DNA of 63,552 nucleotides, the filler included, from Ministeria vibrans ATCC 50519 (Eukaryota > Protista > Filasterea), in NCBI GenBank assembly GCA_943704425.1. It is 5 parts of 5 records of this genome, joined end to end, with 100 filler letters (N's around TTAATTAATTAA, not from the genome) between each part and the next. Parts side by side here need not be neighbours in the genome. Positions count along the whole stretch, not along the records: positions 1 to 7,252 come from CALSCP010000073.1; 4 more parts are not named here. One strand, given 5' to 3'. The notes under the pieces are model-generated. The model ran no database searches, had not been told where the DNA came from, and worked only from the letters and a program-made list of their open reading frames with translations. Each line of letters begins with the position of its first letter. Positions within the stretch are counted from its first letter, which is position 1. The translations under genes were made by a program, and so were the position numbers. Below are positions 1 to 9,516 of this stretch, piece by piece.

Positions 1-210
1 TCTCACTATTCACAAATCTTACCCGCTAAGACAATGCAAAGAAGAACACAAGAGTCCAAAACACAGTCCAAATCAGTCACTCACGATTTCTCACTATTCA
101 CAAATCTTACTCCCTAAGACAATGCAAAGAAGAACACAAGAGTCCAAAACACAGTCCAAATCAGTCACTCACTCATTCGAACTATTCACAAAACGTACCC
201 CCTAAGACCA
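1..210 (-). repeat. ~88-bp tandem intron repeat with a variable 3-nt core (micro-exon array B)
   Basis: Unit on the + strand is CTATTCACAAATCTTAC-nnn-CTAAGACAATGCAAAGAAGAACACAAGAGTCCAAAACACAGTCCAAATCAGTCAC. It shares motifs with the 80-bp repeat at 4650-7252. Confidence 0.85.
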
Positions 211-883
211 TGGCCCAGAGCAGCGAATCAATACAAACGCGTGTCAGGTATACACTCACACAGCCGATATATCAAAATAGAAAATCTTACAGTCTACAAA
301 GTGGTCAGGCCATCAGAGAATTTCAAACGAGCATATGTTCTCTTACAAACTGCAAAACACAGAGCGCCACCCATTCAGGAGCAAGAAAAACAAGTTAGAA
401 CCGATCAGTATCCTTTGTCAAGCAAATCACGAACCTTCTACAGACAAGTTTATTGTTTTAGTCATTGTCGACCAAACCGACTTTTCGTCTTACTTGCACA
501 GAGATTGTCGAGAGACGGCGAGAATCCCTCATTCCCCCTGTACGTAATCTCCTCCAGGTGCCCACGCAAATCTAAAATAGCTGTTGGGAGCGTCTTGAGC
601 TTGCAATTCCCAACGTCCAGAAGCTTCGTCCAGAAAAAGAAAAAAAAAACGAGCCAACTCGTGAGAAATCCTGGCCTTTCTCTCCCCCTTCCCATACCTT
701 GAGCTTCTTGAACTGTCCAATCCAGCCGGGAATGACCCTAAGCGGGTTGTCTGTCAGCAGCAATTCCTGTAGAGTGTCAGCAAGAACAAGAATTTCGTCT
801 GGGAGAGAAGTGAGCCCCATCTTCCTCAGGTTCAAGGAATGGGACGTCTGCGCGGCTTGAATGCATTCCTGTAGTGAAGACAT
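1..883 (-). CDS. 5' part of an LRR-containing gene (gene B, probable Roco-caspase paralog) running into a 3-nt micro-exon array; truncated by the window start
   Basis: ATG at 883. Exon 883-698 (MSSLQECIQAAQTSHSLNLRKMGLTSLPDEILVLADTLQELLLTDNPLRVIPGWIGQFKKLK) and exon 623-494 (LLDVGNCKLKTLPTAILDLRGHLEEITYRGNEGFSPSLDNLCA+A) carry LxxLxLxxNxLxxLP LRR motifs. The second exon ends in phase 1 at GTAAG. AG/3-nt/GT micro-exons follow at 437-435 AAG, 349-347 TTT, 293-291 ACT, 201-199 GGG, 113-111 GGA and 25-23 CGG. Confidence 0.8.
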
Positions 884-1292
884 GCTTTGGCGACAAAGAA
901 ACAGATAAAGATTGGTGTTAATCTGACTGTTTTCTTTTGAAAAGGGTCGTTTTTGTTCGATCAACCTGGCTGAACCTCCTCCTAGCCAAGAAAATTCGGG
1001 AGAACGTCTGGGCTCAACATCAACACCGCAGAGTGTGCGTTGGTGGCCGCAACCCCCTGAGACCACTGAAGGGCTAAAGGAGTCACTACAAGAGTTGCGA
1101 CGGTCATCGCAGAAAGTAAACGGAAAAAAAATTGTTCCTGGGATAAATCAAAAATAATTATTAATGTGCAGGTATCAATATGAATGTACTATAAAAATAG
1201 GGTCGAGCTCTTCTCTCTTCTCCTCACACTGTTACTCACCCACTCTCTTCCTCTATGCCTCTCTCCATGTTTCATCTCTCGGTCTCTCTCTG

Positions 1293-4200
1293 TCACTTCC
1301 CGTCCCGAAACAACAGAATGTCTCCGTCGTTGCGAGTACCCAGCCACTCGTCCCAAATGCGCCCCACCACCATCGCCTGGTACGTGTGCGCCGTGTCCAT
1401 CTCCCGCAGTCTCTGTCGCAGTCCCACCGCAGTGATGTGCTCTTCTCCCGTGCGAAACGCACTCAGTGTCGTCGGTCCCAGTGCGCGCAGAAGCAGCTCA
1501 GTCAGACGAGTGTACTTGGACGTCTTCACCACAGTCCCATCTGCTTTGGTCCAATTCACTTGCTCCTGCGACATGAAACTGCTCGTGTCCGCCAGTGAGC
1601 TCGCCAGCAGCTGACGCGAGTACCCGTGTTGCGCATCTGTGCTCGAGAACGATAGGTCGTCCTCTGCCTTGAGCAGTGCACCAGACCAGCAGAAGTCGCA
1701 CACGACCAGAATGTTGCAGCCGGGCCATTGCACAGTCGCCGTCAAAAGGCCTTTCAGTGCGTCGAGATTGAATCGCGAAAACGGACTGAAGGTGTTGGGG
1801 GCGAACACAGTCCGCTCTGCATCACTGAGCAACAGACCGCCCTGACTGTCCTCCGCCCCATGGCCCAGCAAGTGCACAATCAGCAGTGCGTCTCGTCCCA
1901 CTCCGTCTCCCACATCTCCTATCAAACGACGTGCCGCTGCCGCAATCTCCACCGCAGTCACCCGGTCTCCAGCCTGAGTGTCCGTCACACTCTGCACTTT
2001 AAACCCGCGTCCCTTCCACAGACTCTCCAGTGCACTCACACTCCGACGCACTCCAGGTAAGTCAGCAAACGCCGCCAAGTGAGGGTTACTTGTCGATTCG
2101 TACCGACTCACACCCACAATCAGTGACGCTGCATGGACATACCGCCGCGACATAGGGCCACCTTAAATGAGAGGGAATAGATACTTGAGTCAATGAAAAA
2201 GGATATTTCTGATCTTACAGAGTCGCTTGGTCCACCACTCTTCCACTTTCACATTGCACACGCGCGGTTCTTCACTGTGCAGCACCGCAGCCAACGTCCC
2301 TTCTTCACGGTACATCTCCGGCGACGCAGCCACGTCCAAAGGACGGAACAGAGGCAGTGACGGTTTGGACGGATGGGCAGGCACAAGCACAGCCACACCA
2401 CGCCATCCCCACCGAAGACTCTGCGTCCGCTCACACACTCGCGTGCTCACCCGTTGCAACGTCGCCATCACTCGTTCAGCTGGTCCCCCGTCGTCGCACA
2501 CCTCCACACGAATGCATTCCTCACCCACATTCAGACGCAGTCGCACAGGAGCACACCCGTCCATCACAAGTAAGTCTGTGCATCGTTGAGTCGCTCGGAT
2601 CTCGCACACTTTCATCGTCTCCCACCACAGTGCCACCACAACCAGATGGAAAGTCGCCAATGACACGGGAAGCACAGATCGCGTGTCCTCCTCGTCTTTC
2701 ACCACCTGGTACAGCATCACCTGCACAGGAGCGGGTGTCGCTCGCTCAACAAATGGCGCATGTTCAGGCAGCAACATCGGCACGAGCAGACGACTGCCGT
2801 GTCGGAACACAAGACTCAGTCGCTTAAGTGCCGAAAACAGTGCGGGGCCATCGCGCACGTCTGCACCGGCAAGAACTGGCTCGCCCTTTGCTTCACGCGC
2901 TGCTGCAGTCCACACAAGCCACAATGCAACCTCAACAGGGAATCCCTCCTCAGACCGCTCTCGTGACTCGTCCAGCTCGCGAAACAGCTTCAGTGTCTTC
3001 TTGTTGTCCAGTCGCCGTCCTGCCGCCTTCACCAGGTCAAGCATGTCGAGCGCGCGTTCGCTTGTCGCTCGCTCCCACTGTGCCATCACTACCGAGCACA
3101 GCAACTCGACAGCTGCAATCAGTCGTGGCACATCAAACACAATCGTGTCTACCGCGGCGACACCTCGTGCACTCGAGTCCTCGCGGCACACCAGCACATC
3201 CGCTGCTTCCTCCAAGTACGGCACCAGTCCCGTGCGCAGTGCTTGCTCGTCGGGAACCAGCGACCCGACAGTGATGACGGGCGTGGTCTCGCTCAGTACG
3301 ACACTCGGCAGATCACCAACAGACGACAGCAACTCAATGCGGCCCATCCGCGACCACCGACCAACCAGATCCTGCGCACACACATATTCCAGTGGCAGAG
3401 TGCGGCGACGCACCGCAGCATGCATCCCCTCGCTCAGTTCGCGCAGCCCAATGCCCTTGACACTGCCCACTTGGAAGAACGGAGTGCGACCAGACCCAGG
3501 CAGAATCAAGTGGTTGCCCAACACGGGTCCCACAAGACGATCAATCCCTTTCGCGACAGTACGCAGCAGTGATTGTGGTGCGGTGTCATCGGGAAACGTG
3601 TCGACATGAGTGCCCACAATGAGCACACGGAAGTACGACGAGAGCGTCTCGGGCACTTGGTGTGCAATCACATGAGCCCACTTGGACAGGTGCTCGTACT
3701 GTCGCTGTGCCGCTGTGCGATCGTCCATGACAGACAGGTCGAAGACGAGGATGTACGCGGACTCGGACCCCATGAAGAGCGCGGGGAGAGAGTCAAACAT
3801 GGGCTCACCTGAGTGAGTGTAAAATTGAGAAGAGGAAGTACAAAAGGTAAACTCTCACCTGCAAAGTCGAAGGTGTCCAGGTCAACGTGTTGCTCGCTCA
3901 GCTCGCCAATAAGAAGATCTTGAACAGCGCTCATAGTCAGCGCGACGGGAGCGGGAGAGGTGGGGAGCGTGGGTGCATTGGGGACGAATGTCGAAGAGGA
4001 CGCGGCTGTTGTTGGGACTGGTGGGACTGGTGGGGGAGTCACGACAGTAGGGCTCATCAGTGACTCCTCTTCGCCTCCGTCATCGCGTGGGTCTGTGGCA
4101 GTCGCATCTCTTGGAGTGCCGATCATGCTGGCCAGGCGATACTCCTCGAGCGGCACAGCCTCAAAGAAGCCTCCTTCACAGTTGAGGACGAGTCGCACGC

Positions 4201-7200
4201 GCTTCATCCGTGTCGCCACTGAGCGGTCTTTCTCCTCGGGCAATGGTTCTCCCTGTAGAGCTGCAAGCAGTGCTGTCTTGCCTGCCATCACTGCACCCAG
4301 AAATAGCACTTTGAGTGAGTGCGACTCGACTGAGCCGCGGGAGAGGGCCGCCTTGAACGCTGACTGAAAGATTGCATCACTGACAAACAAGGGTAAAGAT
4401 TTGAGTGGAGAGTTGGGTTCCACTTTGCAGATATCTCTTACGGATCTAAAAAAAAATATGTCAGATCAAAAGGTTGACAGCAATGTTAACACCTTTTGTC
4501 ACTGTGTAGAGCGCCTGCAACAGTTCCTGCGTGTGTCGCTTCCAGACCGCACGGTCTGCAATCCCCATGGAAATAAGCGATACAACCTACTCGTCCCACT
4601 TACCAACTAGAACAAAAGTGTCACTAACTCGTTGTCACTATTCACAAATCTTACCAACTAAAACAATGCAAAGAAGAGTTCAAATCACAGTCCAAATCAG
4701 TCACCATCCATTTCCATCTATTCTTCAAACTTACCCCCTAAAACAATGCAAAGAAGAGTCCAAATCACAGTCCAAATCAGTCACCATCCAATTCGATCTA
4801 TTCTTCAAACTTACACGCTAAAACAATGCAAAGAAGAGTCCAAATCACAGTCCAAATCAGTCACCATCCAATTCCATCTATTCTTCAAACTTACTCTCTA
4901 AAACAATGCAAAGAAGAGTCCAAATCACAGTCCAAATCAGTCACCATCCATTTCCATCTATTCTTCAAACTTACCCGCTAAAATAATGCAAAGAAGAGTC
5001 CAAATCACAGTCCAAATCAGTCACCATCCATTTCCATCTATTCTTCAAACTTACTCGCTAAAACAATGCAAAGAAGAGTCCAAATCACAGTCCAAATCAG
5101 TCACCATCCATTTCCATCTATTCTTCAAACTTACCCCCTAAAACAATGCAAAGAAGAGTCCAAATCACAGTCCAAATCAGTCACCATCCATTTCCATCTA
5201 TTCTGCAAACTTACCCGCTAAAATAATGCAAAGAAGAGTCCAAATCACAGTCCAAATCAGTCACCATCCATTTCCATCTATTCTTCAAACTTACGAACTA
5301 AAACAATGCAAAGAAGAGTCCAAATCACAGTCCAAATCAGTCACCATCCATTTCCATCTATTCTTCAAACTTACTCCCTAAAACAATGCAAATCACAGTC
5401 CAAATCAGTCACCATCCATTTCCATCTATTCTTCAAACTTACAGTCTAATAAAACAATGCAAAGAAGAGTCCAAATCACAGTCCAAATCACAGTCCAAAT
5501 CAGTCACCATCCATTTCGATCTATTCTTCAAACTTACACCCTAAAACAATGCAAAGAACAGTCCAAATCACAGTCCAAATCAGTCACCATCCATTTCGAT
5601 CGATTCTTCAAACTTACCCCCTAAAACAATGCAAAGAACAGTGCAAATCACAGTCCAAATCAGTCACCATCCATTTCGATCTATTCTTCAAACTTACACG
5701 CTAAAACAATGCAAAGAAGAGTCCAAATCACAGTCCAAATCAGTCACCATCCATTTCGATCTATTCTTCAAACTTACTCCCTAAAACAATGCAAAGAACA
5801 GTCCAAATCACAGTCCAAATCAGTCACCATCCATTTCGATCTATTCTTCAAACTTACTCCCTAAAACAATGCAAAGAACAGTCCAAATCACAGTCCAAAT
5901 CAGTCACCATCCATTTCGATCTATTCTTCAAACTTACCAGCTAAATCAATGCAAAGAAGAGTCCAAATCACAGTCCAAATCAGTCACCATCCATTTCGAT
6001 CGATTCTTCAAACTTACCAACTAAAATAATGCAAAGAACAGTCCAAATCACAGTCCGAATCAGTCACCATCCATATCCATCTATTCTTCAAACTTACAGT
6101 CTAAAACAATGCAAAGAACAGTCCAAATCACAGTCCAAATCAGTCACCATCCATTTCGATCTATTCTTCAAACTTACCAACTAAAACAATGCAAAGAACA
6201 GTCCAAATCACAGTCCAAATCAGTCACCATCCATTTCGATCTATTCTTCAAACTTACTCCCTAAAACAATGCAAAGAAGAGTCCAAATCACAGTCCAAAT
6301 CAGTCACCATCCATTTCGATCTATTCTTCAAACTTACGAACTAAAACAATGCAAAGAAGAGTGCAAATCACAGTCCAAATCAGTCACCATCCATTTCGAT
6401 CTATTCTTCAAACTTACACCCTAAAACAATGCAAAGAACAGTGCAAATCACAGTCCAAATCAGTCACCATCCATTTCCATCTATTCTTCAAACTTACTCC
6501 CTAAAACAATGCAAAGAAGAGTCCAAATCACAGTCCAAATCAGTCACCATCCATTTCGATCTCTATTCTTCAAACTTACTCCCTAAAACAATGCAAAGAA
6601 CAGTCCAAATCACAGTCCAAATCAGTCACCATCCATTTCCATCTATTCTTCAAACTTACGCCCTAAACCAATGCAAAGAAGAGTCCAAATCACAGTCCAA
6701 ATCAGTCACCATCCATTTCGATCTATTCTTCAAACTTACGAACTAAAACAATGCAAAGAAGAGTGCAAATCACAGTCCAAATCAGTCACCATCCATTTCG
6801 ATCTATTCTTCAAACTTACACCCTAAAACAATGCAAAGAACAGTGCAAATCACAGTCCAAATCAGTCACCATCCATTTCCATCTATTCTTCAAACCTACT
6901 CCCTAAAACAATGCAAATCACAGTCCAAATCAGTCACCATCCATTTCCATCTATTCTTCAAACTTACAGTCTAATAAAACAATGCAAAGAAGAGTCCAAA
7001 TCACAGTCCAAATCAGTCACCATCCATTTCCATCTATTCTTCAAACTTACGGTCTAATAAAACAATGCAAAGAAGAGTCCAAATCACAGTCCAAATCAGT
7101 CACCATCCATTTCCATCTATTCTTCAAACTTACCCGCTAAAATAATGCAAAGAAGAGTCCAAATCACAGTCCAAATCAGTCACCATCCATTTCCATCTAT

Positions 7201-7252
7201 TCTTCAAACTTACCCGCTAAAACAATGCAAAGAAGAGTCCAAATCACAGTCC
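1293..7252 (-). CDS. Roco-type GTPase fused to a C-terminal caspase/metacaspase-like (peptidase C14-like) domain, preceded by a micro-exon array (gene A); 5' end lost in the gap
   Basis: Predicted exons are 34 x 3-nt micro-exons (7216..4604), 4555-4493, a 4-nt exon 4445-4442, 4379-3859, 3808-2219 and 2161-1293. All introns are GT-AG and all frames join. ROC motifs are the P-loop KVLFLGAVMAGKT, G3 DTFDFAG|EPMFDSL, AYILVFDLS and G4 LIVGTHVD, followed by a COR-like region. The C-terminus has ASLIVGVSRY, LIVHLLGHG and LVVCDFCWSG (His-Gly / Asp-x-Cys dyad). Confidence 0.85.
4604..7252 (-). repeat. 80-bp tandem repeat = 77-nt spliceosomal intron + variable 3-nt micro-exon (array A; 34 micro-exons)
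   Basis: Minus-strand unit is GTAAGTTTGAAGAATAGATGGAAATGGATGGTGACTGATTTGGACTGTGATTTGGACTCTTCTTTGCATTGTTTTAG-NNN. It has a canonical donor, a CTGAT branch-like motif, a pyrimidine tract and a TAG acceptor. Only the 3 nt between AG and GT are hypervariable, with 13 distinct triplets. Confidence 0.9.
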
Positions 7253-7440: not shown

Positions 7441-8111
7441 ATTTCTTTTTATCCGGCCCCGCTGCCCCGTACAACAGCGTCTTCTCGGCGTGCATCCGCG
7501 AGAGACAAACAAACCAAAACCAAAACCAAAAAACTGGTGTTTTTCAACACCACCACATTGTCAAAGAAGGAGAACGAAACGAACTGCGTAATTGATTCTG
7601 TGTGTGTCAGCTGTTGGGAGGGAAATGGGCGTGTACTTTTGGAGTTCATGTCGTGTTGGTAGTGAGTGTCTCTTCTTTCTTCAACCATATATTGCATGGG
7701 TACATGAGCACACATCTCGAAATGACCAGTGTGCCTACCAGTCCACTCCTGAGCGTTCTGTGAGTGTCAGCACGCGTGAGCAGTTTGTGAGGCGGGAGAG
7801 CGTTAGTTGATGAGAGGCAGCGACTTGGTGAGTGGCTCTTGTACTTGCGCGTGTTGGGTGAGCACAGTGACAGCACAGACACATTCTGGCGAAATGATTC
7901 CAGTCTTGGCGTTCTGCCTTCTGTGCGCGTATCAGCACGCGTGTGCAGTTGGGTTTAGAGTGGCAACCGTCGGCTGACGACTGGGCGAGTTTGCGTTTGT
8001 CTTTATATTTTTGTACATTGAAAAAGAATGCGAATAATTCTACTAATTATAAAAGCGTAATCAGTGAGTAATCTCAATCTGTTCAGTTTCAAATTTTCTA
8101 CTCACCTCAAC

Positions 8112-8200
8112 ATGCCAAGCCTCCGTGACATCCGCATGGTCACCGCCCAGATCAGAAGAGCTCCCAAAGGACAATGGGAGGTAGATAAAAGTTCTTTGAC

Positions 8201-8234
<34 letters not shown>

Positions 8235-9516
8235 TTGAAACTCGTTTTGTAAGGTCGCGTCACGTTGTCCTTCGGGGCACCCTCAGACGCTCAAGGTCTA
8301 CCCGCTCGTCTCAGGCAAACCCTTTCCTACCCTCTACTGGCTCGTGTGTCCAGACCTGATCAGACAAATCGGCACAATGGAGGTGAGACACTTCTCTCTA
8401 TCACTTTGTTCTCTCTCTATCACTCGTTGTCTCTCTATCACTTTGTTCTCTCTCTATTTGTCTCTCTTTATCTGTGTTCTCTCTCTCTATCACTTTGTCT
8501 CTCTCTCTATCACTATTTGTCTCTCTATCACTTTGTCTCTCTCTATCACTTTGTTCTCTCTCTATCACTTTTGTCTCTCTATCACTTTGTTCTCTCTCTC
8601 TATCACTTTGTTCTCTCTCTTTATCACTTTGTTCTCTCTCTATCACTTTTGTCTCTCTATCACTTTGTTCTCTCTCTCTATCACTTTGTTCTCTCTCTTT
8701 ATCACTTTGTTCTCTCTCTATCACTTTGTTCTCTCTCTATCACTTTTGTCTCTCTATCACTTTGTTCTCTCTCTATCACTTTTGTTTCTCTCTCCCTCTC
8801 TCTCCCTTCCATCTCTCTATCTCCCCCTCCCATCTCCCTCTCTCTCTCCCTCCCATCTATCATCTCTCATCTGTCTCCCGCTCTCTTCTCCTCTTTGCAG
8901 AGCCAAGGCCCCCTCGACCGCGTCAGAGCCGCCATGGATGCCGACGACAAGATGATGCAGCGCAACCTCGAAGACCACAAACAATACGCAAGGGTATAAT
9001 ACTTATTATTACAATTATCATGATAGGGTCGTGTCATCATTCGTTTCGTCATCCTTCTTGCATGCAGGACCGATGGGACTACCTCAACGACGAGGACAAG
9101 GCATACTGCGAGCGGGCAGGCTACAAAAGCTCACTTCAGGACCGTGGCATCGGCGGCACACAGTTCCCCGAGACCACTCGTTGCCTCGTACCCCACTCAA
9201 ATCAAATCAATTTCAATAATGTCTCCTATTTCTTCCTTCTTGCCTCTCCCAGCATTGTATGTACGCAGCTCACTTTGGATCAGCACACCGACTTGTCGTG
9301 TGCGACTGGGTTGACGACGACGCAGGCAAGCCCCTTCAGTGTGAAATGACAGAGGGACGCATCGAACGACTGCGCGACATTGCTCGCGCAGCCGACGACG
9401 AAGAAGCTTCACTCGACCAAGTCACAGTCGAGTCAGAGCCACACCCACCAACCTCCACAACTACGACTGCAGCGGCGACTGACACGGAGACAAAGAATGC
9501 AGACGACAAAGAATGA
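8112..9516 (+). CDS. DUF501 family protein (5 exons)
   Basis: Exons 8112-8180, 8254-8382, 8901-8993, 9068-9187 and 9253-9516 join in frame. Motifs SRCPSGHP, GKPFPTLYWLVCP and GIGG...RCLHCMYAAH are typical of DUF501. Confidence 0.8.
8391..8790 (+). repeat. Intronic CT-rich minisatellite (CTCTCTCTATCACTTTGTT-like unit)
   Basis: Degenerate ~16-22-bp units inside DUF501 intron 2 (8383-8900). Confidence 0.85.

Follow-up and report, generated by a model that had tools for sequence, protein, structure and literature searches.

An 80-base tandem repeat in the genome of the filasterean Ministeria vibrans ATCC 50519 (GenBank assembly GCA_943704425.1; 29.7 Mb in 2860 contigs) is very probably a chain of constitutively spliced exons of a single codon each, lying in a candidate immune-receptor-like gene with a Roc/COR-caspase body. 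It was found in the window, a stretch of 63,552 nucleotides made of five joined parts of this genome, whose positions 1-7252 are the whole of contig C73 (CALSCP010000073.1); all features on this contig lie on the minus strand. Tandem Repeats Finder (TRF) placed an array of period 80 and 32.7 copies at 4638-7252. Within this array, called array A here, 33 minus-strand sites match the pattern TTAG/NNN/GTA[AG]G[TA] (slashes mark splice boundaries), and a 34th micro-exon at 4604-4606, reading CTAG/TTG/GTAAGT, has unique flanking introns of its own. A unit of array A consists of a pyrimidine-rich tract leading to TTTTAG, three variable bases, and GTAAGT with a near-constant 77-nt spacer. Both splice-site flanks, 3' AG and 5' GT, are present in 34 of the 34 units, with AG and the donor start GTA free of any variation (one donor reads GTAGGT, another GTAAGA). 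Column entropy over the 34 units reaches 1.89, 1.26 and 1.94 bits at the three variable bases and is elsewhere mostly ≤0.62, with a few columns up to 1.4. We are thus looking at a coding tandem repeat that is 96% intron:

4604..7252, minus strand: array A, 34 three-base micro-exons, from pattern and TRF; runs off the contig end at 7252
Micro-exon starts (plus-strand coordinates, 3 nt each): 7214, 7134, 7051, 6968, 6900, 6820, 6740, 6660, 6580, 6498, 6418, 6338, 6258, 6178, 6098, 6018, 5938, 5858, 5778, 5698, 5618, 5538, 5443, 5375, 5295, 5215, 5135, 5055, 4975, 4895, 4815, 4735, 4655, 4604
Introns of array A: 77 nt, with variants of 65, 79, 80 and 92 nt
4556..4603, minus strand: last array intron, 48 nt, unique sequence, GTAAGT...TTGCAG, linking the final TTG micro-exon to a 63-nt exon

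Triplets of array A and of three paralogous arrays (on contigs C43, C915 and C2647) were found joined in RNA, in genomic order and with their flanking introns gone, in three sequencing runs. This bears out the proposal of a preliminary description, made from sequence alone, that the triplets are real micro-exons. For array A, a contig of run X5 reads ACT GGA TTC CGG GGG CGA CGG AGA CG, nine consecutive units in genomic order (5443, 5375, 5295, 5215, 5135, 5055, 4975, 4895, 4815). The C43 array is represented by CTC GGG ACG GGT GGT ACG ACG ACG AC, corresponding to units 8 onward, and C2647 by TTG AGG AGG AAT GGG TTG ACA. C915 yielded two strings: ATC TTG TGT GGT CTC ATT GGT ACG CTC, again nine consecutive units, and CTG CTC CTC GGG TTG followed by ACCATGCGCGAT, in which the array end is joined to the start of the next exon. 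Two of the joined strings, including that of array A, were searched for in the assembly and were absent as contiguous DNA.

The nature of the runs was assessed by mapping four of them (X1, X2, X5 and X6) on paralogue C43, chosen because it has both array flanks, both arrays of C73 being cut by contig ends. Runs X1, X2 and X5 show the GT..AG joints 8698>8750 and 8778>8838 (C43 locus coordinates), which are absent from X6, and have zero depth over most of the array, while X6 covers the array introns deeply. With joints at ordinary introns and no depth over most array introns, we take X1, X2 and X5 to be spliced RNA. Some contigs join a spliced run of micro-exons to a retained array intron (TTAG ACT..., ...GGT GTAAGT), as expected of partly processed pre-mRNA of these loci and not of a retrocopy; the retained-intron contigs also suggest that array introns are not removed in strict 5' to 3' order. 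No skipping was seen among the RNA strings, all five of which are strictly consecutive, as far as assembled contigs can tell, since Logan contigs drop rare variants. An apparent skip in X5 (8091>8395) was discarded: it involves two identical ATG units, and the joining is consecutive after all.

The spacing of the array is not entirely regular. A 12-nt intronic sub-repeat in 1, 2 or 3 copies gives unit lengths of 68, 80 and 95 nt (variants at 5468-5502, and 68-nt units preceding the micro-exons at 6900 and 5375), and a 65-nt intron of array A is correctly removed in RNA. One array intron was folded and proved no more stable than its shuffles (z = 0.41), giving no sign of a special RNA structure, and an Rfam scan of 1-7252 returned no match.

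Reading phase and the predicted linker

The array introns are in phase 1, so that codons straddle them, as the preliminary description had proposed. Three independent lines agree on this: the flanking frames, an RNA junction and the pattern of substitutions. Upstream of the arrays, the second of two leucine-rich repeat (LRR) exons leaves one spare base, and the exon after the array requires one. Both sides could be read in C43, C915, C1260 and C1049; where one phase-1 flank was available it agreed (array A, C2647, C2362, C312, C173, and a second array of C73, array B). On C73 itself, the exon before array B ends TGT GCA A/GT and the exon after array A opens AC CGT GCG, both just as described. 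The C915 RNA junction runs into the frame of the downstream exon (...G/CT C/CT C/GG G/TT G/AC CAT GCG). At eight loci the array starts with TTT or TCT, then ACT, ATT, TTT or TCT, then GGG, GGT or GGA, which in phase 1 always gives Ile, Tyr or Phe, and Trp (codons A/TT or A/TC; T/AC, T/AT, T/TT or T/TC; T/GG); these substitutions are synonymous or conservative in phase 1 only. Translated in phase 1 with every unit included, seven curated arrays of intact loci and the C1600 fragment are free of stops, and the stop-free translation given earlier for array A was reproduced exactly. The choice between two acceptors downstream of array A, at 4556/4555 or at 4527, falls on the former: the peptide it opens, RA.WK, is kept in seven paralogues, and the C915 RNA uses the homologous acceptor.

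These observations lead us to propose the following scheme. In each unit, a strong 3' splice site precedes the three coding bases, and a consensus 5' splice site opens the 77-nt intron behind them; a codon takes its first base from the end of one micro-exon and its other two from the start of the following one. All units being 3 nt long with phase 1 on both sides, i.e. symmetrical exons, any number of them keeps the frame. LRR exons and array would share one translated mRNA, whose product would carry a linker of ~35-45 residues connecting a short LRR module at the N-terminus to the Roc/COR-caspase body. Gly (13%) and Trp (9.3%) are abundant in the linkers, as are Arg and, at 6.7% each, Tyr and Phe; Leu, Lys, Gln, Asn, Met and Cys are scarce. 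Tandem duplication of whole units would make arrays longer or shorter, every duplication contributing one codon and one intron. At a 5' splice site, such a micro-exon falls entirely within the stretch with which U1 snRNA normally pairs, which leaves little room for simultaneous occupation of its two flanks; splicing of the 3-nt exons would rely on intron definition, each intron being treated on its own.

Several points weigh against this scheme or narrow it. Among the joints listed, none connects LRR exon 2 to the first micro-exon; in three runs, the contigs that reach the first micro-exons keep the preceding intron (C43 4919-5001), so the 5' connection between LRR exon 2 and array is one we infer. 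RNA support for C73 consists of one 30-letter consensus from one run, and its acceptor at 4556/4555 is a prediction from homology. The loss of rare variants from Logan contigs leaves room for low-level skipping, and the linker is a predicted product, read from DNA and RNA. Phase 0 of the concatenated triplets is stop-free too, hence open frames cannot fix the phase by themselves. Lastly, a 66-nt intron of the C43 array is retained in two runs, where it would add an in-frame TAG, and some copies may be decaying (C43 with this stop-bearing intron, C312 with a TGA).

Two of these loci deserve a description of their own. In C43, the intron at 6333-6398 is only 66 nt long, its pyrimidine tract being reduced and the adjacent donors reading GTAAAT; this copy may be failing, or may be regulated by retention. 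In C312, at 7808-8852 (minus strand), a 14-unit array has no LRR exons upstream, contains one GC donor, and bears an in-frame phase-1 TGA (GAT then GAT); truncation or decay of this copy is probable. In C43, C915 and C2647, the intron that leads to the first micro-exon holds an in-frame phase-1 ATG (ATGTTGGGCTGCTCAG/) that is not conserved in C2362 or in the arrays with 88-nt units; it is probably there by chance, the alternative being a start without LRR.

Variability of the triplets

Variation in the arrays is concentrated in the exonic bases. Over 110 units from four arrays with 77-nt introns, entropy is 1.95, 1.51 and 1.78 bits at the three exonic positions but averages 0.12 in the introns, and the pairwise difference per site is 0.68 in exonic bases versus 0.042 in introns (16-fold). 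Even among the 171 pairs of units with identical 77-nt introns, the triplet is shared in only 22 and different at every position in 70. Distance within an array has hardly any influence on intron similarity, and a weak multi-unit periodicity is visible (lag 5 in array A; lag 9 or 12 in C2647). There must be recent copying or homogenisation of whole units together with faster change, or selective retention of differences, at the coding bases. We favour exonic bases kept diverse by selection on the peptide and introns that are homogenised or recently copied, though selection and a local mutational process both fit the present data, which cannot tell them apart. Insertion of mobile introns (introners, reverse splicing) at every codon of an older coding stretch was rejected as the main process, because the strict period, the recurring multi-unit blocks and the array-specific intron variants fit tandem duplication.

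The alternative that survives best leaves splicing in place and removes the adaptive value: arrays would be old, their introns held by strong purifying selection, and the triplets drifting as a mere spacer. A 3-nt exon would need near-perfect signals, and there is indeed hardly any variation at the 5' splice site, in the branch region or in the pyrimidine tract; RNA retains the copy whose tract is shorter and whose neighbouring sites are weaker, and the linker is of low complexity. On the other hand, the families of 80-, 88- and 86-nt units differ from each other by substitutions and indels while each is homogeneous, which means that intron sequence is not fixed by function, and several intron columns are freely polymorphic. 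Nor is drift expected to leave an alphabet as far from random as this one, with 30 of 64 triplet types, a middle A in 4% of units and no unit ending in AG, or first and last codons that are conserved across paralogues. We consider drift unlikely, if still worth keeping in mind.

At the opposite end, the array may be a germline hypervariable module of an immune-receptor-like family, forming an aromatic, Gly-rich loop whose length and sequence are tuned codon by codon. The composition of the linker recalls the binding loops of antibodies, which are rich in aromatic residues and glycine. This is a tentative idea to which we give a modest chance, and an equally speculative one is that change in such a module is confined to the three bases through diversifying selection or through local mutation at unit junctions. 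Skipping, whether stochastic or induced, may be a further source of diversity within or between cells.

The preliminary description had proposed that the triplet alphabet is selected for junctional diversity and for few nonsense products. Its observations on array A are accurate: the leading dinucleotides are GG, CG, AC, TT, CT and AG only, all four last bases are used, and AGA is the only stop-prone unit in our recount of 34. The statement that such an alphabet covers 18 amino acids is also arithmetically right for array A, but it fails as a sign of selection, since 10% of six-dinucleotide sets do as well. The proposed selection itself is not supported, given that only consecutive inclusion is seen and that other arrays do use AA, GA and AG starts. 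Across 203 curated micro-exons of 30 types, whose kinship by duplication makes the effective sample small, further leading dinucleotides appear (AT, AA, TC, CC, GA, GT, GC, TG and CA). The depletion of AA-, AG- and GA-initial triplets predicted for paralogous arrays amounts to 14 units versus 20.8 expected from positional composition, and by triplet type to 4/12 versus 26/52 (Fisher p = 0.35), which does not sustain the claim. Departures from randomness in the alphabet lie elsewhere: one type starts with GT and, as said, none ends in AG, and units of either kind would create rival splice sites.

Could the arrays nonetheless work as a combinatorial kit, whose units are skipped or included, randomly or under regulation, so that junction peptides differ from transcript to transcript and the alphabet avoids stops? 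Any subset of 3-nt phase-1 exons would keep the frame, and rare isoforms would be invisible in contigs. In array A, only 7 of 528 non-adjacent junctions would give stops, none of them through the skipping of a single unit. Among the curated micro-exons as a whole, AA-, AG- and GA-initial units make up 6.9%; the same dinucleotides occupy codon positions 2-3 in 16.6% of cases in the gene's ordinary exons. Yet five of five RNA strings are consecutive, the lone apparent skip being explained by identical ATG units. T-ending units, which any stop needs, are enriched rather than avoided (25.6%, whereas the gene's ordinary exons have T in first codon position in 14.9% of cases). Stops would arise at 53 of 2822 hypothetical non-adjacent skip junctions (1.9%), close to the 2.5% given by the product of ordinary-exon frequencies; in C2647 the figure is 11%, and two single-unit skips there yield stops. 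The actual order of units avoids stops only modestly better than shuffled orders (product of probabilities 0.037). With the depletion of stop-prone starts weak when measured against array composition (14 vs 20.8; p = 0.35), an 18-amino-acid coverage expected at P = 0.10, and a small effective sample of units related by duplication, we regard the kit as improbable.

Least credible of all, to the point of being nearly negligible, is that the arrays are an intronic satellite and that the joined strings derive from an intron-less copy, either a retrogene or a collapsed paralogue, that escaped assembly. Such a copy could be missing, the assembly being in many pieces and having gaps and misjoins where arrays lie, and the RNA label of the runs is a guess, but the strings follow the order of four different arrays (7-9 listed triplets each, ~15 units for C43), some contigs are hybrids of a spliced run and an array intron, the assembly lacks the two strings that were searched for, no such string is among the loose ends listed for DNA run X6, and the RNA runs are spliced elsewhere in the C43 locus, with no depth over most array introns.

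Comparison with known systems

Arrays of one-codon exons were not found in the literature searched, which contained only isolated 3-nt exons, the micro-exon genes (MEGs) of schistosomes, single intron gains by tandem duplication, and the ROCO shuffling of brown algae. The MEGs of Schistosoma hold runs of short symmetrical exons between ordinary end exons and have fast-evolving products (bioRxiv 10.1101/2023.06.21.545858; PMC4350168). They share with the arrays symmetrical exons, a frame preserved whatever is included, and fast-evolving coding bases. However, MEG exons are mixed in size (3-81 bp) and separated by long unrelated introns, whereas here all exons are 3 nt and the introns, of 77-85 nt, are tandem copies that barely differ from one another. 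Micro-exons encode most of a small secreted protein in MEGs; here they contribute ~35-45 codons next to 1028 downstream in four ordinary exons, in a predicted protein of well over 1000 residues that looks intracellular by its LRR N-terminus, Roc/COR and caspase parts. MEGs are also alternatively spliced, while full inclusion alone is seen here, in contigs that hide rare isoforms.

Isolated 3-nt micro-exons are known from animals in RPS24, homothorax, MAP4K5 and cytohesin-1 (PMC12207440, PMC7392893, PMC8632122, PMC6314551). As in the arrays, they are flanked by AG and GT and add one codon; unlike the arrays, they are isolated and often regulated cassettes. Here, 34-44 three-base exons stand head to tail and are included together, where the animal cases are single. 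A further parallel lies in recursive splicing, as in Drosophila Ubx, where a ratchet site AG/GTAAGT leaves nothing in the mRNA. In both, a 3' splice site abuts a 5' splice site, the two are not usable together, and removal would have to be stepwise; a recursive site is however an exon of zero length, while the three bases between AG and GT are kept in RNA here. Tandem genomic duplication across AG..GT creates a spliceable intron and leaves the coding sequence unharmed (PMC3265369, PMC4974935). Every extra 80-nt unit likewise adds a spliceable intron, but the known gains are single events and those of the arrays number dozens at one place, in several paralogues, each adding a codon. The candidate immune receptors of the LRR-ROCO type in brown algae combine LRR and Roc-COR with symmetric phases and duplication of a small exon (PMC3341825, PMC11378527). 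Their unit is a 72-bp exon in phase 2 that encodes one whole LRR, against a 3-bp exon in phase 1 and one linker residue here, and the effector of the array genes is a caspase or kinase, unlike in the brown-algal LRR-ROCO genes.

Exons well below ~50 nt are usually thought hard to splice. The correct joining of 34-44 head-to-tail 3-nt exons is therefore an extreme test of intron definition and of splice-site spacing, and an array is a compact, repeatable substrate for the study of splicing order and fidelity. Each duplication adds one codon at no risk to the frame, and a fast-evolving linker in a receptor-like family could matter functionally. Gene finders and short-read assemblers fail on such arrays, and aligners cannot place 3-nt exons; similar structures elsewhere may hence be overlooked.

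Paralogue family and flanking genes

LRR exon 1 is present in 11 copies in the genome, which implies at least 11 paralogues, and arrays were found behind at least 8 of the 11 LRR modules. A generic three-unit pattern had 150 matches genome-wide versus 0 for its reversed control. Where the assembly continues, the layout is common to all. LRR exon 1 is followed by LRR exon 2, which leaves in phase 1, and then by an intron of ~140-210 nt. Two micro-exons whose introns of ~50 nt are unique precede the homogeneous array; behind it come one or two more, nearly always TTG, and the phase-1 exon encoding RA.WK. The arrays fall into three intron families, with 80 nt in array A, C43, C915 and C2647, 88-89 nt in array B, C1260, C1049, C312, C1600 and C173, and 86 nt in C1237. 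Arrays meet N runs, contig ends or abrupt joins to unrelated sequence in C2362, C2647, C1260, C173, C1600 and C2414; as the short-read assembly breaks at arrays, both their lengths and their number are lower bounds.

The body behind the array is of the Roc/COR-caspase type in C73, C1260, C1049, C312 and C173, and a coiled coil with a protein kinase in C915. In C73, exactly one GT-AG model without stops exists downstream of array A (4555-4493, 4422-3859, 3808-2219 and 2161-1293; 1028 codons), and all its introns are in phase 1:

4493..4555, minus strand: 63-nt exon, phase 1 in and out, encodes RAVWKRHTQELLQALYTVTK; member of the sole stop-free GT-AG model
3859..4422, minus strand: exon with P-loop (GAVMAGKT) and DFAG, N-terminal half of a Roc-like GTPase, phase 1 at both ends
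2219..3808, minus strand: exon with the GTPase remainder (VGTHVD) and a COR-like domain, phase 1 at both ends
1293..2161, minus strand: last exon, caspase (peptidase C14) domain, stop codon at 1293-1295

The first of these exons begins at 4555 (AG at 4557-4556) with AC CGT GCG, and a peptide of the RAVWKRHTQELLQALYTVTK type is kept in paralogues C173, C1260, C312, C1049, C43 and C915. Domain and fold searches were run exon by exon. On the P-loop exon, Pfam matches to Roc, Arf and small GTPases were all below threshold (Roc E 0.12). The following exon gave a weak profile match to the LRRK2 Roc domain (E 0.11-0.85) and no match to PDB sequences with phmmer, but it scored 0.96 to COR-A/Roc clusters in a protein atlas, and the best Foldseek matches of its model were LRRK1, the COR domain of Chlorobium tepidum Roco and LRRK2 (E 1.8e-5 to 1e-3), with low TM-scores and from an AlphaFold model of modest quality (pLDDT 62). 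Fold search and atlas thus place a COR domain directly after the Roc-like part. The last exon scores 25.2 bits with PF00656, above the cutoff of 21.4 (E 1.6e-5), and matches the NCBIfam model caspase_w_EACC1 with E 3.5e-8, below the cutoff of that family. Fold and motifs together suggest a ROCO-like protein, and the predicted architecture of the gene would be LRR, micro-exon linker, Roc/COR and caspase. A host family that combines an LRR or WD40 sensor, a Roc/COR switch and a caspase or kinase effector looks like a set of cell-death or immune receptors, judging from domain content.

The start of the next gene downstream lies on the same contig, with an array of its own:

704..886, minus strand: exon 1, ATG, 61 codons, LRR (LRR_1 E 0.007, LRR_8 E 0.022, both below threshold)
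494..623, minus strand: exon 2 (LRR), 130 nt, ends TGT GCA A/GTAAGA, last base 494, exits in phase 1
1..349, minus strand: array B, runs off the contig end at 1
347-349 and 291-293: leading micro-exons TTT and ACT of array B, with unique introns
199-201, 111-113 and 23-25: 88-nt units GGG, GGA and CGG of array B

TRF reports this second tandem repeat at 1-212 with a period of 88. The end of LRR exon 2 is identical in C43, C915, C2647, C2362, C1260 and a metagenome relative, and the leading pair and the 88-nt unit family of array B recur in C1260 and C1049. In C173 (4221-4450), a gap is followed by a CGG unit identical to that at 23-25 of array B and then by an exon ~85% identical to 4493-4555. 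C173 probably continues the second gene (886-1), which would make two ROCO genes tandem neighbours.

Outside this genome, ENA contigs L025 and L026 from a metagenome relative carry Roc/COR-caspase genes 57-88% identical to the one at 1293-4555, with WD40 repeats upstream and not LRR plus array. The closest relative of the Roc/COR exon, in L025, has 88% identity, WD40 exons upstream and no array. Homologues of the LRR exon were found in only two short ENA contigs, both ending before any array, and a conserved 19-nt core of the intron had no match among JGI metagenome contigs. Within the gene at 1293-4555, phase-1 introns throughout make each domain-sized exon a 1-1 symmetric module. The LRR-plus-array head joined to a kinase body in C915, and the Roc/COR body joined to WD40 in the relative, look like domain shuffling between receptor-like genes.

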